Shown here in pieces: positions 1,886-8,756 of a stretch of DNA of 10,434 bases. Under the pieces are notes generated by a model that was given only the letters and a program-made list of their open reading frames with translations, ran no database searches and was not told where the DNA came from. The DNA lies in the IMG/VR virus record IMGVR_UViG_3300007812_000019, positions 1 to 10,434 of that record. One strand, 5' to 3'. Every line of letters begins with the position of its first letter. Position 1 is the stretch's first letter. The translations under genes and the position numbers were made by a program.

Positions 1886-2356
1886 TTAACCAGTTTTGAA
1901 TTTTTGCATTATTATGGATATAATACCTGCCGCGATAAGAACTATTCCTGTTACTCCTAGCAGTACATATAGCGTTGGGAAGAAGCTGAAGAACGACACC
2001 ATACCGTTTACTAGTGGGTGTGTTAGGTTATACGCTAATGTTCCTGGTGACGGATTGCTTATTGCTGAGGCAGTAGCGGTAGCGAAGATAGATAGAATGA
2101 GACCAGATAGTCCTATTATCACACCGACAATCAGTAAGGCTATTGCTATTGTTGGTACGTCGAAATCGCCTGACCCAAACGTTACTTTGACTAACAACCC
2201 TACTCCTGGATCATGAATTCTAGTAGCTTTTTTTGTTTCTGGTACATCAACACCGTCTACATCTGGCATGTGGGCGTTAATTACCTTGAACATTTTTGCT
2301 TTTTTACCACCTGTTCCTGTTGCTTTTGCTGATGGAACGACTACTGAAACTGACAT
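1886..2356 (-). CDS. Major capsid protein of a large spindle-shaped virus (SMV1/ATV-like, Bicaudaviridae)
   Basis: Basic N-terminal region followed by two long hydrophobic helices (GDFDVPTIAIALLIVGVIIGLSGLILSIF...; FFPTLYVLLGVTGIVLIAAGIISII) with an N-L-T sequon in the loop. Closely resembles the SMV1 MCP as I recall it; not searched. Confidence 0.85.
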   Translation of the reverse strand: MSVSVVVPSAKATGTGGKKAKMFKVINAHMPDVDGVDVPETKKATRIHDPGVGLLVKVTFGSGDFDVPTIAIALLIVGVIIGLSGLILSIFATATASAISNPSPGTLAYNLTHPLVNGMVSFFSFFPTLYVLLGVTGIVLIAAGIISIIMQKFKTG

Positions 2357-2470: not shown

Positions 2471-2486
2471 GTAAAACTTATAATTT
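2471..2486 (+). promoter_or_regulatory. BRE/TATA (GTAAAACTTATAATTT), probable promoter of the hairpin-RNA plus mini-CRISPR transcript
   Basis: Purine-rich BRE followed by TTATAA. The expected TSS (~2505-2510) coincides with the start of the GC-rich hairpin, and no sizeable + strand gene follows. Confidence 0.6.
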
Positions 2487-2508
2487 AGAACATCCCAGAA
2501 CAGAAATT

Positions 2509-2581
2509 GGGTACCCCCGTAGCGGGGTATCCTATATATGGGGCGCCCCGCGGGGGTGTGGCGTAGCTTGCCTGCCCCCGT
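2509..2581 (+). ncRNA. Putative structured RNA (two GC-rich hairpins and a central palindrome) forming the 5' part of the mini-CRISPR transcript
   Basis: 51/73 GC. Hairpin 1 at 2509-2532 has a 9-bp stem and loop CGTAGC. GGGGCGCCCC lies at 2540-2549. Hairpin 2 at 2550-2581 also has CGTAGC at its apex and ends on the base before repeat 1. Confidence 0.55.
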
Positions 2582-2662
2582 GTTGAAATAAGGAAGAACT
2601 GAAAGTTTTCTATATGTCTCTTTAACGTCTCTACCTCAGTTGAAATAAGGAAGAACTGAAAT
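2582..2662 (+). CRISPR. Virus-borne mini-CRISPR array: 2 x 24-bp repeat GTTGAAATAAGGAAGAACTGAAA(G/T), one 33-bp spacer, no cas genes in the window
   Basis: Repeats at 2582-2605 and 2639-2662 are 23/24 identical. Length and the ACTGAAAG 3' end match Sulfolobales-type repeats (8-nt Cas6 handle). Spacer 2606-2638 is TTTTCTATATGTCTCTTTAACGTCTCTACCTCA. Confidence 0.85.
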
Positions 2663-2796: not shown

Positions 2797-3267
2797 TCAT
2801 ATTCGTTCCTGCAACCTACCTAAAACCTTATCTCTAATTAGTGAATAACCCCAGTATTCTGGGTATTTCTTATAGACGTAGTTTAGAATCTCGTCTTTAC
2901 TCTTCCTAACCCATTCCCTGAAAAACGTCTCAATCTCCTTTTCCTCTTCCTCAGGTTTAAATTCGCTATTTAAAACGTATTTCCTTATGTATCCTATTAT
3001 TGCTTCGCTCAGCGGATCTCTTACTTCCTCTTCCTCCTCCACGCAAACCTCTCCTAATTCGATCAATTTGTCAATATAATCCTGTAATTTCGACGAATAA
3101 GCACCGAAGAACCAAGGCTTAAAATCCAGCCCTAGTTGTACTCCTTTCTCCTTCTCAAGTAAAAAGAAGATCTTCTGCAGTTTAGTCGGAGTGACCTCTG
3201 TATTCTCCTCTTTAGCGGTATAAAGCAACAGTTTGATTAAGCGGTAAATTCTGTCCTCGGTTAACAT
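2797..3267 (-). CDS. Panacea/SocA (DUF4065, YwgA-like) antitoxin-domain protein, orphan
   Basis: Motifs TKLQKIFFLL, FKPWFFGAYS and C-terminal LNYVYKKYPEY. Start moved from 3285 to the ATG at 3267 because the TATA (TTTATA, 3300-3305) is too close to 3285. Confidence 0.75.
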   Translation of the reverse strand: MLTEDRIYRLIKLLLYTAKEENTEVTPTKLQKIFFLLEKEKGVQLGLDFKPWFFGAYSSKLQDYIDKLIELGEVCVEEEEEVRDPLSEAIIGYIRKYVLNSEFKPEEEEKEIETFFREWVRKSKDEILNYVYKKYPEYWGYSLIRDKVLGRLQERI

Positions 3268-3334
3268 AACCAACCCTAATATCATACACAGAGAATGAAT
3301 ATAAATTTGGTAGGGGTTTGAGCTTCATTGCCTA

Positions 3335-5624: not shown

Positions 5625-6362
5625 ATGAATTTCAAAATGCTTAAGGCGTATATGTCCACATATGATAACCCGTTACATGTCATGTTTAGGACTGCATTAA
5701 ACAGGTTCCCTTTCACAGCGAACTTAAGGAACGGGTTGGAAGTGGAAATAAAGTCTAAAAGGCACGCCTGGTTTTTTTCGACGTTACACGACCTTGACAT
5801 CATTTTTGCCAATGATATATTTATACAATTTAGGTACAAGGACAGGATACTAAAATTCTATTTCGATATAAATAATTTCGTAGCTTTCGGGGAAATTTTC
5901 AGAGACGATATATATAATGTTGATGTGAAAGGAAGGACAGTAGTTGATGTCGGTGCGGGGATAGGCGATTCGTCAATTTATTTTGCGTTGAACGGTGCAA
6001 AGAAAGTCTATGCATTTGACGTTAATGTGTCGTACTTAGAGAAGAACATAAAGGAAAACAATCTAAAAGACGTCGTTGAGCCGATTCGTTGTGAGTGTGG
6101 ACTTTCGAATAATTTAGATATTATAACTCTGAAATACAATATTCCTTATGGGTCTGTACTTAAAGTCGATTGTGAGGGGTGTGAATACGGTTTCTTTGGT
6201 GTGGCTCCGCCACGTTTGATTAGTAGATATCATGCAATTATTATAGAATATCATAACGGCGTTCAACATCTTGCGGATCTACTTAGAGCATCAGGGTTTA
6301 ACGTTGTAATTCGAGGGAACAAGAAGAAGATCGGCTTGATATATGCAAGGCGACTAAGATGA
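5625..6362 (+). CDS. FkbM-family SAM-dependent methyltransferase
   Basis: VVDVGAGIGDSSIYFA (SAM-binding motif I), KKVYAFD, LKVDCEGCEY, IIIEYH. Confidence 0.9.
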   Translation: MNFKMLKAYMSTYDNPLHVMFRTALNRFPFTANLRNGLEVEIKSKRHAWFFSTLHDLDIIFANDIFIQFRYKDRILKFYFDINNFVAFGEIFRDDIYNVDVKGRTVVDVGAGIGDSSIYFALNGAKKVYAFDVNVSYLEKNIKENNLKDVVEPIRCECGLSNNLDIITLKYNIPYGSVLKVDCEGCEYGFFGVAPPRLISRYHAIIIEYHNGVQHLADLLRASGFNVVIRGNKKKIGLIYARRLR

Positions 6363-7354
6363 AGTATGACCCGCGAATAGCCCAATTACGTTTCTTCGCG
6401 TCTTTGTCAGTTGCTTTATATCATCTGTGGACTCTTCAGATAGTCCCCCTTGCGTTTTTCCGTCCTGGTTGGCTAGGTGTTCCGTTGTTTTTCGAGTTAT
6501 CGATATTTCTCCTCATGAGCAGACTAGATGAAAACCCCTCGCTCTCCCGTTATTTCAAAAGAAGGGTGAGGAGGATATGGCCACTTTATTTCCTCGTCGT
6601 CGTCGTAGTATTCTTAGCCGACAGATATATGTTCAATCTGAGGGTGACATATTACGACTTGTTACTCCATTTTGTGTTCGTTTCCTTCGTTCTTACACCG
6701 TTTTCCTTTCATTACCTCTTCTGGTCTCTTCAGCTGGAAGAATGGATGTACTTAGCTATCCCCTTCATTCATGCAATGGATGATAAAGCAAAGTTTCAAA
6801 CAGCTGTTTTGTTGGTTTTTATATCGTTTTCCTATAGTCTCTTTATCGTCCTCCTCCCCTACAACGAGTTCCACTTACTTTACCTTATGCCACCCTTCTG
6901 GTTAGGGGCATATGGGTGGGGGATAATTGCTTACCTTTTGAAGAAGAAACAGAAAGATGAACAAACCAACAAAAAAGCCAAATATTTCATACTAATACTT
7001 TACGCTCAATATGTTTTTACTGCATTGGTATTTTCCTCTAATAATGAATTTGTATATGAGCTCTTCACAAGGTTCTTGATTTACAACCTGGCGTTACCCG
7101 CTTTCGCCCTCCTTATTCTGAACCCACCTAAAGTACTTAATCGTATAACGGTCTTCCTTGGAGAGGTAAGCTACGGGGTCTATCTGTGGACTTTACTATT
7201 TCAGGAACTTTTCGGAGTAGCTGGAATACTTTACGGCATCCTGACAGCTATCGCTACGGAGTTCCCATTAAGAAGAGGAGAAATAATAAGTAGGTTGAGT
7301 TACTCCTCAGTCCCGTCTGGGAAAAAAGTTTCACATTTTCGCAATAATGTATAG
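6359..7354 (+). CDS. Acyltransferase family 3 (OafA/YrhL-like) integral membrane O-acyltransferase
   Basis: LRFFASLSVALYH, GVPLFFELS, YFKRRVRRIWPLY, FWSLQLEEWMY, LGEVSYGVYLW. ATGA overlap with the methyltransferase indicates translational coupling. Confidence 0.92.
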   Translation: MKYDPRIAQLRFFASLSVALYHLWTLQIVPLAFFRPGWLGVPLFFELSIFLLMSRLDENPSLSRYFKRRVRRIWPLYFLVVVVVFLADRYMFNLRVTYYDLLLHFVFVSFVLTPFSFHYLFWSLQLEEWMYLAIPFIHAMDDKAKFQTAVLLVFISFSYSLFIVLLPYNEFHLLYLMPPFWLGAYGWGIIAYLLKKKQKDEQTNKKAKYFILILYAQYVFTALVFSSNNEFVYELFTRFLIYNLALPAFALLILNPPKVLNRITVFLGEVSYGVYLWTLLFQELFGVAGILYGILTAIATEFPLRRGEIISRLSYSSVPSGKKVSHFRNNV

Positions 7355-8251
7355 GTAGTCTTCTCTGAGTTGCTTATATTTCACGTAAGCTTCGTCTGGT
7401 AGTAACCTTGGTGTATACACTACATGTGAATACTTCTTTTTTAGCTCGTTCTTAAGTATAAGCCCGACGTTAACACTGTTATAATCTCTAAGCGGGTATT
7501 TAGTTTTTAGTAATTTCCCAGCAATATTCACAACGTTCTTGTACACGTGTGCCTCAGATGTAGTCATCGTCCGTGGTACTACTGTTATAGCATACGACGA
7601 TGGCATAGCTTTCATCAATACACCAGACAGTCTCGTTTCCGACGGTATAGTCAAAAGCACGTTACTGAACTTTATCGCCCATGTCTGTGCGTATTTATGT
7701 ATCTTTTCTAGTCTCAGTCTATCCATTTTACCTACCTGCTTCCCGAAACCTATTCCAGCGTCGTCTATAATTATCATCGGGATCTTATTTATTCCGTAAT
7801 TTTTCATTGCCTCAATTAGGTCGTCGAGTTGCAGAGGGTCGATAATTATGTGGGCGATGGCGACGTCCCAGTCGCCGTACAGTGCATAGGCGAGCCACAA
7901 CGCTAATGAGGATTTCCCTCCCCTAGCCTCCCCACTGATGATCGTAGTTTGACCAGTATCTATTGGTACAGGTCTAATTTTCATGAACTTGTGTTCCTTT
8001 CTGTCTATCGCTATTTGGTATATTGTATGCATCATGAGAACCGTTAAATCGGCAATACCTTCCATGTAATATTTTCTGGACAAGTCAATATACTGCTTCT
8101 CCATGTAGGGAAAATCAATGAACTTTACATTGCCCTCATACACCTGTGTGTAGTATTTATCGAACATGGGCAATAACGTATTGTAATCTACTTTCAACAG
8201 TGCCTTCTCTGGGTCTGTGTCGTTCAATTTTATATAATCATTTATTCGCAT
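7331..8251 (-). CDS. P-loop ATPase (ASCE group; possible genome packaging or extrusion ATPase)
   Basis: Walker A GEARGGKS and Walker B IIIDD. The ATG at 8251 follows an SD-like GGGTGG and overlaps the end of the upstream gene (track start 8269). Confidence 0.8.
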   Translation of the reverse strand: MRINDYIKLNDTDPEKALLKVDYNTLLPMFDKYYTQVYEGNVKFIDFPYMEKQYIDLSRKYYMEGIADLTVLMMHTIYQIAIDRKEHKFMKIRPVPIDTGQTTIISGEARGGKSSLALWLAYALYGDWDVAIAHIIIDPLQLDDLIEAMKNYGINKIPMIIIDDAGIGFGKQVGKMDRLRLEKIHKYAQTWAIKFSNVLLTIPSETRLSGVLMKAMPSSYAITVVPRTMTTSEAHVYKNVVNIAGKLLKTKYPLRDYNSVNVGLILKNELKKKYSHVVYTPRLLPDEAYVKYKQLREDYLYIIAKM

Positions 8252-8756
8252 CAACTTCCACCCTTTCAAGAATTTCTTTTTTAAGAACCTGGTAATCTTC
8301 AGGCTTCCAGAACTTCAATATACTGTATTTGTCTCTTTGGTCTCTCTCAAACACAACTGGTTTGAGTAATTTGATCTTCACAGTGCTTACTTTTTGCCCC
8401 GAAGGATATACATATTTTATAATAAGGTTCTGGTCGTCAAATTGCAGATCATAGACCTTCCTGGGGAGAAATAGTAAACTAGTAACATTGTATCTATGAT
8501 CTTCTTTCGCTAATTTTACAACTATTTTCTCTGGAAATAATAAAACGTTGTATATACCCCTCTTTTTCACGTTTATTGTTACTGAAGTCTTGGATTTCCT
8601 TTTAGCTTCTGGGTCGTTACAATCTGCTTGTAATAGCTCATACACATCATCGCTTATTTCCCTGACCTTGTAACACTCCCAAGGGAACGAAAATATAGGT
8701 AGGTCGTGGTTGCGTGTCTTTATTCTCCTTATTTTTTTCCTGTACCCTCTCCTCAT
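8238..8756 (-). CDS. Hypothetical basic protein (172 aa), coupled to the ATPase
   Basis: Arg/Lys-rich N-terminus, TATA at ~8779-8786, stop overlaps the ATPase start. Confidence 0.75.
   Translation of the reverse strand: MRRGYRKKIRRIKTRNHDLPIFSFPWECYKVREISDDVYELLQADCNDPEAKRKSKTSVTINVKKRGIYNVLLFPEKIVVKLAKEDHRYNVTSLLFLPRKVYDLQFDDQNLIIKYVYPSGQKVSTVKIKLLKPVVFERDQRDKYSILKFWKPEDYQVLKKEILERVEVDANK

Follow-up and report, generated by a model that had tools for sequence, protein, structure and literature searches.

A cas-less, single-spacer mini-CRISPR array in an SMV-like bicaudavirus and its candidate target in a fusellovirus-type virus

[quoted passage not shown] The question is raised by a stretch of DNA of 10,434 nucleotides, here called the window and listed in IMG/VR as contig IMGVR_UViG_3300007812_000019. 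Parts of the Sulfolobus monocaudaviruses SMV4 and SMV1 match it at 86-89% identity, and we assign it to the SMV-like bicaudaviruses, which are tailed spindle-shaped viruses of archaea. An earlier reading of its letters (the original prediction) had singled out positions 2582-2662 as a CRISPR array of 24-bp repeats around a 33-bp spacer, lying beside the capsid gene and with no cas gene in the window. We propose, at a probability of about 0.65, that this element is a virus-borne, cas-less mini-CRISPR array that serves interviral conflict through the Cas proteins of the host. The kind of array is already known; what is new here is the host repeat family, a concrete candidate target in a different virus family, the retention of the spacer across bicaudavirus lineages, and a hairpin shared by the flanks of the array and of the target.

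The anatomy of the array, for which coordinates are given in Table 1, bears out the original prediction on each of these points. By sequence repeat analysis of the window the 23-nt sequence GTTGAAATAAGGAAGAACTGAAA is present exactly twice, at 2582-2604 and 2639-2661, with a period of 57 nt, and base 24 is G in the first copy and T in the second, so that the two repeats are identical at 23 of 24 positions. Because only about 1e-6 exact 23-mer pairs would be expected in 10.4 kb (our own arithmetic), the pair is not a product of chance. The 3′ end of repeat 1, ACTGAAAG, is the predicted 8-nt 5′ handle of a CRISPR RNA (crRNA). Placed upstream of the major capsid protein gene at a distance of 226 nt, the array occupies part of the 440-nt gap that separates this gene from the next open reading frame (ORF). 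Searches of PHROGs, Pfam and PADLOC found no Cas family among the ten largest ORFs of the window. The spacer, which we term S_A, has no second copy in the window: the IMG/VR scans match only 2606-2638, and an exact-match search of the fetched loci finds the array copy only. Seven further contigs of this virus, drawn from seven samples of the Joint Genome Institute (JGI) and the European Nucleotide Archive (ENA), carry an identical array.

Judged by its sequence, the viral repeat is a genuine CRISPR repeat of the type used by hosts of the order Sulfolobales. In a scan of one genome per prokaryotic species, the repeat pattern was found on one contig only, that of Stygiolobus sp. CP850M (order Sulfolobales), which carries 108 copies of GTCGAAATAAGGAAGAACTGAAAG in two arrays; the window repeat agrees with it at 23 of 24 positions, the sole difference being at position 3. 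Cas2, which scores above the NCBIfam cut-off, is encoded on this contig as well, and so is a Cas6-like protein. The original prediction had set a simple local duplication unrelated to CRISPR against a match to a host repeat. A duplication would account for the presence of two copies and for nothing further, and it has virtually no chance of being correct, ruled out as it is by the 108 repeats in Sulfolobales CRISPR arrays beside cas2 and faced also with the occurrence of the repeat in the mini-arrays of other viruses. On one point the original prediction was mistaken: it held 33 bp to be short for a Sulfolobales spacer, but the Stygiolobus spacers that go with this repeat are 31-37 nt long (mode 34), so a 33-nt spacer is normal for the repeat family. 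The sense strand of the repeat is fixed as the one ending CTGAAAG, an ending that other Sulfolobales repeats have too, because both Stygiolobus arrays carry degenerate repeats at one (distal) end and, in the array whose start was recovered, the region upstream of the first repeat is AT-rich and free of ORFs of at least 80 aa. The usual 8-nt handle of Sulfolobales CRISPR repeats is AUUGAAAG. When compared with the fetched loci, the Stygiolobus spacers gave matches of only 15-16 nt. As separate observations on this host genome, the array contig encodes a 265-aa protein composed almost wholly of ankyrin repeats (Pfam E=1e-84; L006 751-1545 (-)), which is unusual for an archaeon, together with an R.HinP1I-like endonuclease and an N6 methylase (entry L006 751-1545 (-) / L005 4098-6395), and a MazE-like gene lies between the two arrays.

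The target of the spacer was sought by a codon-wobble-tolerant scan of JGI metagenomes, which returned 13 loci: seven viral mini-arrays, one unrelated chance match (L017) and five loci without flanking repeats. The spacer is matched at all 33 positions in contig L020, including all 11 positions left free in the search pattern, at 31 of 33 positions in L012, L015 and L019, and at 30 of 33 in L013. Contig L015 is fusellovirus-like, with 66-68% nucleotide identity over about 65% of its length to the spindle-shaped viruses SSV7, SSV12 and ASV1, including the helicase block, and L013 has genes in common with SSV. In these viruses the protospacer lies between convergent genes and, on the reverse strand, inside an ORF of 35-36 aa whose peptide contains EVETLKRHIE, the very peptide that the original prediction had read from the reverse complement of the spacer. 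This small ORF has the marks of a real gene: a conserved GTG/ATG start with a TTTTAAAA box 23 nt upstream of it, a 3-nt indel between variants that is in frame, differences from the spacer (at spacer positions 12, 18, 21 and 30) that all fall on third codon positions and are synonymous, and an independent prediction of a 35-aa gene by a gene caller (L042 3442-3549). The locus is a candidate case of a target in a small gene of an SSV7/ASV1-like, fusellovirus-type virus, which would belong to a different family from the carrier of the array.

The original prediction had left the choice between a competing virus and a host gene. The metagenome scan supports the virus, in that the spacer was met in mini-arrays and fusellovirus-type contigs only; a host gene found no support in that scan, though host genomes were not searched for the protospacer. 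Searches of other collections were less productive: published phage and archaeal-virus records and plasmids gave chance-level matches of 17-29 nt only (bacterial phages, halophile and marine plasmids), two codon-wobble patterns run against IMG/VR returned the array itself only, and nothing among published viruses matched the fusellovirus module. The target fusellovirus is present in ENA assemblies whose accession numbers neighbour those holding the virus of the window, which suggests that both come from the same study and that virus and target co-occur.

The direction of the guide bears on the type of effector that could use it. A crRNA from the + strand would be antisense to the mRNA of the 35-36 aa ORF, as the original prediction had supposed and as the coding strand of the target ORF bears out. 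For the protospacer adjacent motif (PAM), four Stygiolobus spacers that match known Sulfolobales viruses at 30-32 of 34-37 positions are informative, and TCN lies directly 5′ of the protospacer (in the spacer sense) for three of them, a PAM assignment that rests on these four spacers. At the fusellovirus protospacer the flank at the PAM position is AAT, not TCN, in all five variants, and CCT or TCT is found on the opposite strand, adjoining the other end of the protospacer; for both reasons the spacer looks inverted relative to PAM-directed insertion. The feature of DNA targeting by a type I system, a correct PAM 5′ of the protospacer, is absent at this target, and the lack of TCN fits the type III targeting that the original prediction had in mind. 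In addition, handle and target flank agree at no more than 3-4 of 8 positions, and the self-protection of type III systems should therefore not apply. Since the guide would be antisense to an mRNA and the type I PAM is absent at the target, targeting of type III, transcription-dependent and PAM-independent, is most likely the best fit.

We now put forward the following mechanism. The array would be transcribed on the + strand from a viral promoter, and host Cas6 would cleave each repeat 8 nt from its 3′ end to give a crRNA in which the handle ACUGAAAG is followed by the spacer. This crRNA would be loaded by host effector complexes, and the guide would pair with the mRNA of the 35-36 aa ORF in co-occurring fuselloviruses of the SSV7/ASV1-like kind, such that a competing virus in the same cell would be excluded or suppressed.

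The arrays of related viruses provide further evidence. In Acidianus tailed spindle virus (ATSV) the same repeat, with 1-2 differences, occurs twice around a 36-nt spacer (S_B), which is the only spacer of ATSV isolate 1. S_A is the only spacer in the SMV-like loci L007, L023 and L009 (the window itself) and in the ATSV-like locus L014, it follows a spacer S_B′ in L018 and L024, which represent a second type of SMV-like virus, and it follows a spacer S_C in the ATSV-like loci L008, L010 and L022, while SMV4 has a solitary repeat and no spacer. Wherever it is present S_A adjoins the last repeat, at the trailer end, and differs from the spacer of the window at 0-2 positions, and it is kept to this degree in three other array types of ATSV-like and SMV-like viruses as their flanks diverge. 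In terms of identity, S_A is 94-100% conserved between lineages whose flanks either cannot be aligned or are about 70-85% identical. At the upstream end, on the side of the GC-rich element described below, the spacers differ between lineages. Polarised CRISPR arrays usually bear this signature, with a trailer end in common and an upstream end that varies, and that is the arrangement read here. The last repeat is without its final G, ending GAAAT or GAATT, in four of the five multi-repeat array types (the window, L014, the L008 type and L018/L024), and the solitary repeat of SMV4 is likewise without it, with a GAAAT or GAATT end; the exception is ATSV isolate 1, in which the first repeat ends GAAAT and the last GAAAG.

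For the other mini-array spacers (S_B, S_B′, S_C and S_D) no credible target was found in IMG/VR, published viruses or the fetched loci, and a match of 21 of 22 nt to another mini-array spacer in L027, a GC-rich contig with no relatives, was treated as chance. The upstream-end spacers of L018 (1830-1864 (-)) and of ATSV isolate 1 (L002 3026-3061) have in common a 20-nt core with three differences, and their boundaries are offset by 2-3 nt. This likeness between S_B and S_B′ suggests independent capture from the same region of diverged targets.

The solitary repeat of SMV4 is favourable to a different role, in which the viral repeats act, once transcribed, as a repeat-mimicking RNA anti-CRISPR (Racr, or solitary-repeat decoy) that soaks up host Cas6 and Cas7, so that the immunity of the host to the virus itself is blunted, and the spacer is incidental. 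This repeat, GTCGAAATAAGTAAGAACTGAAAT, stands at L003 1649-1672 (KP282678 ~545-568), a site syntenic to the array of the window, with a shorter GC-rich element and no spacer, and it is a candidate solitary repeat unit or RNA anti-CRISPR, having the anatomy of the Racr-candidate solitary repeat units known also in archaeal viruses (PMC10651486). The point changes in the viral repeats relative to the host repeat would also agree with a decoy. The window, however, has a complete repeat-spacer-repeat unit, and a decoy needs neither an exact viral target nor a spacer conserved beyond its flanks. We therefore regard a decoy as quite unlikely to be the explanation of the window array, and such a role could in any case coexist with that of a guide.

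Several findings weigh against an array that guides host Cas proteins. Local alignment of the 225-300 nt upstream of the viral arrays with the Stygiolobus leader gave scores equal to those of shuffled controls, so a host-like leader is absent by this measure. No spacer turnover is seen across the eight contigs of the window's virus, and several sister arrays have mutated handles upstream of spacers (ACTAAAAG, or a repeat ending GAAAA or GAAAT), which may weaken crRNA loading. On the host side, the Cas6-like protein and a Cas3′-like helicase of the Stygiolobus contig both fall below curated cut-offs, and this repeat was found in one genome only, that of a species representative of Stygiolobus, which may be from another site and is a candidate host only. 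On the target side, the exact-match contig L020 is SSV-like over short stretches only; the fusellovirus in the ENA assemblies with neighbouring accession numbers differs from the spacer at 2 positions, and the exact match is from another sample; and the small target ORF has no significant family match, for which reason a ribbon-helix-helix identity considered for it was dropped.

The missing leader, the nil turnover and the handle mutations, together with the degenerate repeats upstream in ATSV-like loci, are what would be seen if the array were an inactive relic, namely a piece of a host array gained through recombination by an ancestral bicaudavirus and spreading since then by recombination among bicaudaviruses as a neutral passenger. 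Such a relic would not be expected to show S_A at 94-100% identity between flanks as diverged as those described above, nor to match exactly a virus found in a metagenome of the same kind, and the variation of upstream-end spacers by lineage suggests continued acquisition or exchange. On this evidence we hold a relic to be rather improbable and retain a functional mini-array as the preferred reading.

The region directly upstream of repeat 1 is occupied by a GC-rich hairpin element (Table 1). The segment 2500-2665, comprising this element and the array, has a predicted fold of -55.9 kcal/mol (z=-2.6). Rfam and ARAGORN gave no match at E<=1 on the window, and the element is thus not a known RNA family or tRNA fragment detectable by these tools. 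Its counterparts upstream of the ATSV, L008 and L018 arrays are homologous to a GC-rich element that lies directly upstream of the fusellovirus protospacer (z of 7-8.5 against shuffles), and order and orientation agree between the array side and the protospacer side. The element in the window resembles that of the fusellovirus less strongly, with z of 2-3.5. The sequence CGTAGCGGG occurs once per locus, only at the array-upstream and protospacer-upstream sites, and a tblastx comparison found no wider homology between array loci and target loci. We roughly estimate at less than 1% the chance that a protospacer placed at random in a genome of 17 kb would be so near to the element. In ATSV-like viruses a degenerate repeat on one side and repeat 1 on the other enclose the element, which thus resembles a spacer of excessive length. 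At the position equivalent to 2497-2507 of the window these loci have the fuller degenerate repeat; a remnant of one at 2497-2507, weak in the window itself, might possibly place the window's element in a spacer-like position too. The candidate TATA-like boxes of the window are not conserved in SMV4 or ATSV-like viruses, and SMV4 is without the box at 2531-2541.

The homology of the two elements raises the possibility that Cas proteins are not involved at all, and that the hairpin together with the 33-nt segment is a piece of sequence in common with fuselloviruses (terminator, origin or recombination site) that acts as an antisense RNA or a protein-binding site, the CRISPR repeats being secondary. 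The common order and orientation of the elements and the stable fold would be in keeping with such a regulatory module. The 33-nt segment is, however, bounded precisely by host-type repeats and has the unit length typical of a host array, and the two loci are otherwise without homology; we consider this module very improbable. For the mini-array that we favour, the shared hairpin may point to a link between array and target beyond the usual capture of a spacer, and it could have one of two meanings: it may be a hot spot for the generation of prespacers that also substitutes for a leader in directing integration, or the array may have arisen where the targeted gene had been, at a locus once common to the two virus families. 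Both are tentative ideas, and we think it unlikely, on present evidence, that either is right.

The fusellovirus element has features of its own. It adjoins the protospacer on the upstream side, takes up about 80 nt (L015 ~1950-2036, for instance), and has a 43-nt core enclosed by inverted repeats of 17 nt. L012/L015/L019 have this core in one orientation and L013/L020 have it in the other, the two forms being alike (36/43 identity) only as reverse complements, and the inversion alters the C-terminus of the 35-36 aa ORF, which runs into the element. In this respect the element looks like an invertible switch.

Table 1. Positions of the array, its upstream element and other features in the 10,434-nt window
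Feature	Position	Strand	Remarks
Repeat 1	2582-2605	+	24 nt; exact 23-nt duplicate; 23/24 to Stygiolobus sp. CP850M repeat GTCGAAATAAGGAAGAACTGAAAG
Spacer S_A	2606-2638	+	33 nt; matches metagenome contigs and sister mini-arrays
Repeat 2 (terminal)	2639-2662	+	24 nt; final base T, not G
GC-rich hairpin element	2508-2581	+	directly upstream of repeat 1; hairpins ~2509-2532 and 2549-2582; motif CGTAGCGGGG
Possible 3′-half remnant of an older degenerate repeat	2497-2507	+	AGAACAGAAAT; 2497-2509 is 92% identical to 2652-2664; weak for the window
TATA-like box, candidate array promoter	2531-2541	+	CCTATATATGG; putative, read from the sequence
Second candidate TATA-like box	2478-2485	+	TTATAATT
Major capsid protein gene	1886-2356	-	PDB 7ro2 (SMV1 capsid, solved structure) E=1e-76; phrog_28873; transcription directed away from array
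162-aa ORF, array neighbour	2797-3285	-	phrog_14939, function unknown; weak PADLOC matches to PDC-M19A (4.6e-13) and part of DarG (4e-6); no Pfam match
SAM (S-adenosylmethionine)-dependent methyltransferase	5625-6362		
O-acetyltransferase-family membrane protein	6359-7354		
DnaA-like replication initiator	7331-8269	-	DnaA-like initiators annotated in fuselloviruses too, e.g. SSV7

Given its PADLOC matches, the 162-aa ORF on the other side of the array from the capsid gene could be a defence or anti-defence gene. Among the assemblies of the window's virus, L039 (ENA ERZ27246786) has a single G-to-A change in the second hairpin of the GC-rich element with the array unchanged, and its gene content on one side of the array differs from that of the others.

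The closest known systems are the cas-less mini-CRISPR arrays established in the portogloboviruses SPV1 and SPV2 and in Acidianus two-tailed virus (ATV), whose array has a single spacer (Medvedeva 2019, PMC6858448); SPV1 and SPV2 are the precedent that the original prediction had invoked. The array of the window resembles these in being cas-less and intergenic in a Sulfolobales virus, in having one or two spacers between host-type repeats, in the match of its spacer to another virus, and in that the target adjoins sequence related to the array's own neighbourhood (PMC6858448). Of the features that characterise such arrays, the host-matching repeats, a spacer length within the host range, the lack of detected cas genes and the match to another virus are all found in the window; a host-like leader is not. 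We consider the leader typical of virus-borne mini-arrays and not strictly defining, and the ATV array and stand-alone repeats were described without leader information (PMC6858448). In contrast to the SPV1 and SPV2 arrays, that of the window has a Stygiolobus-type repeat with the handle ACUGAAAG and no host-like leader, its target is in the Fuselloviridae and not in a sister strain, and distinct bicaudavirus lineages have kept its spacer where turnover might have replaced it.

A locus still closer in sequence is that of ATSV, where KU645528 11703-11992 has been annotated in GenBank as a 'possible viral CRISPR locus' since 2016; no target and no host repeat are recorded in the annotation. The locus agrees with that of the window in its repeat (1-2 differences) and in its general layout, and the GC-rich elements upstream of the two are homologous. 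ATSV-like metagenome contigs carry the spacer of the window with 2 differences. The locus of ATSV isolate 1 differs in that it is not beside the capsid gene, has another spacer and no S_A, and has extra degenerate repeats upstream. Near this mini-array, ATSV has a second annotated repeat region (L002 388-1302; KU645528 9232-10146), and the TIGR-Tas paper refers to the ATSV genome paper as the source for an archaeal virus with a TIGR-like array structure (PMC12045711). The third related group is that of the solitary repeat units, which are candidate RNA anti-CRISPRs and are known from archaeal viruses too (Camara-Wilpert et al. 2023, PMC10651486). They have in common with the array of the window host-type repeats in a viral intergenic region without cas genes, and the syntenic single repeat of SMV4 fits their anatomy (PMC10651486), whereas the window does not have a single repeat but two repeats around a spacer with a real target, that is, a complete guide.

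The essence of our proposal is that a bicaudavirus may borrow host Cas proteins to act on a virus of another family. With the array of the window, virus-borne mini-CRISPR arrays extend to the SMV-like monocaudaviruses and to the Stygiolobus-type repeat family, and a candidate case is provided of a member of the Bicaudaviridae that carries a guide against the Fuselloviridae, the portoglobovirus examples known so far being directed at sister strains. Several virus lineages appear to have kept one 'anchor' spacer, and interference by it is predicted to be dependent on transcription and independent of a PAM. The hairpin that lies beside both the array and the target could explain how such arrays originate and, if true, either reading of the hairpin would explain the as yet unexplained pattern in SPV1 and SPV2, in which spacers target regions beside the array.
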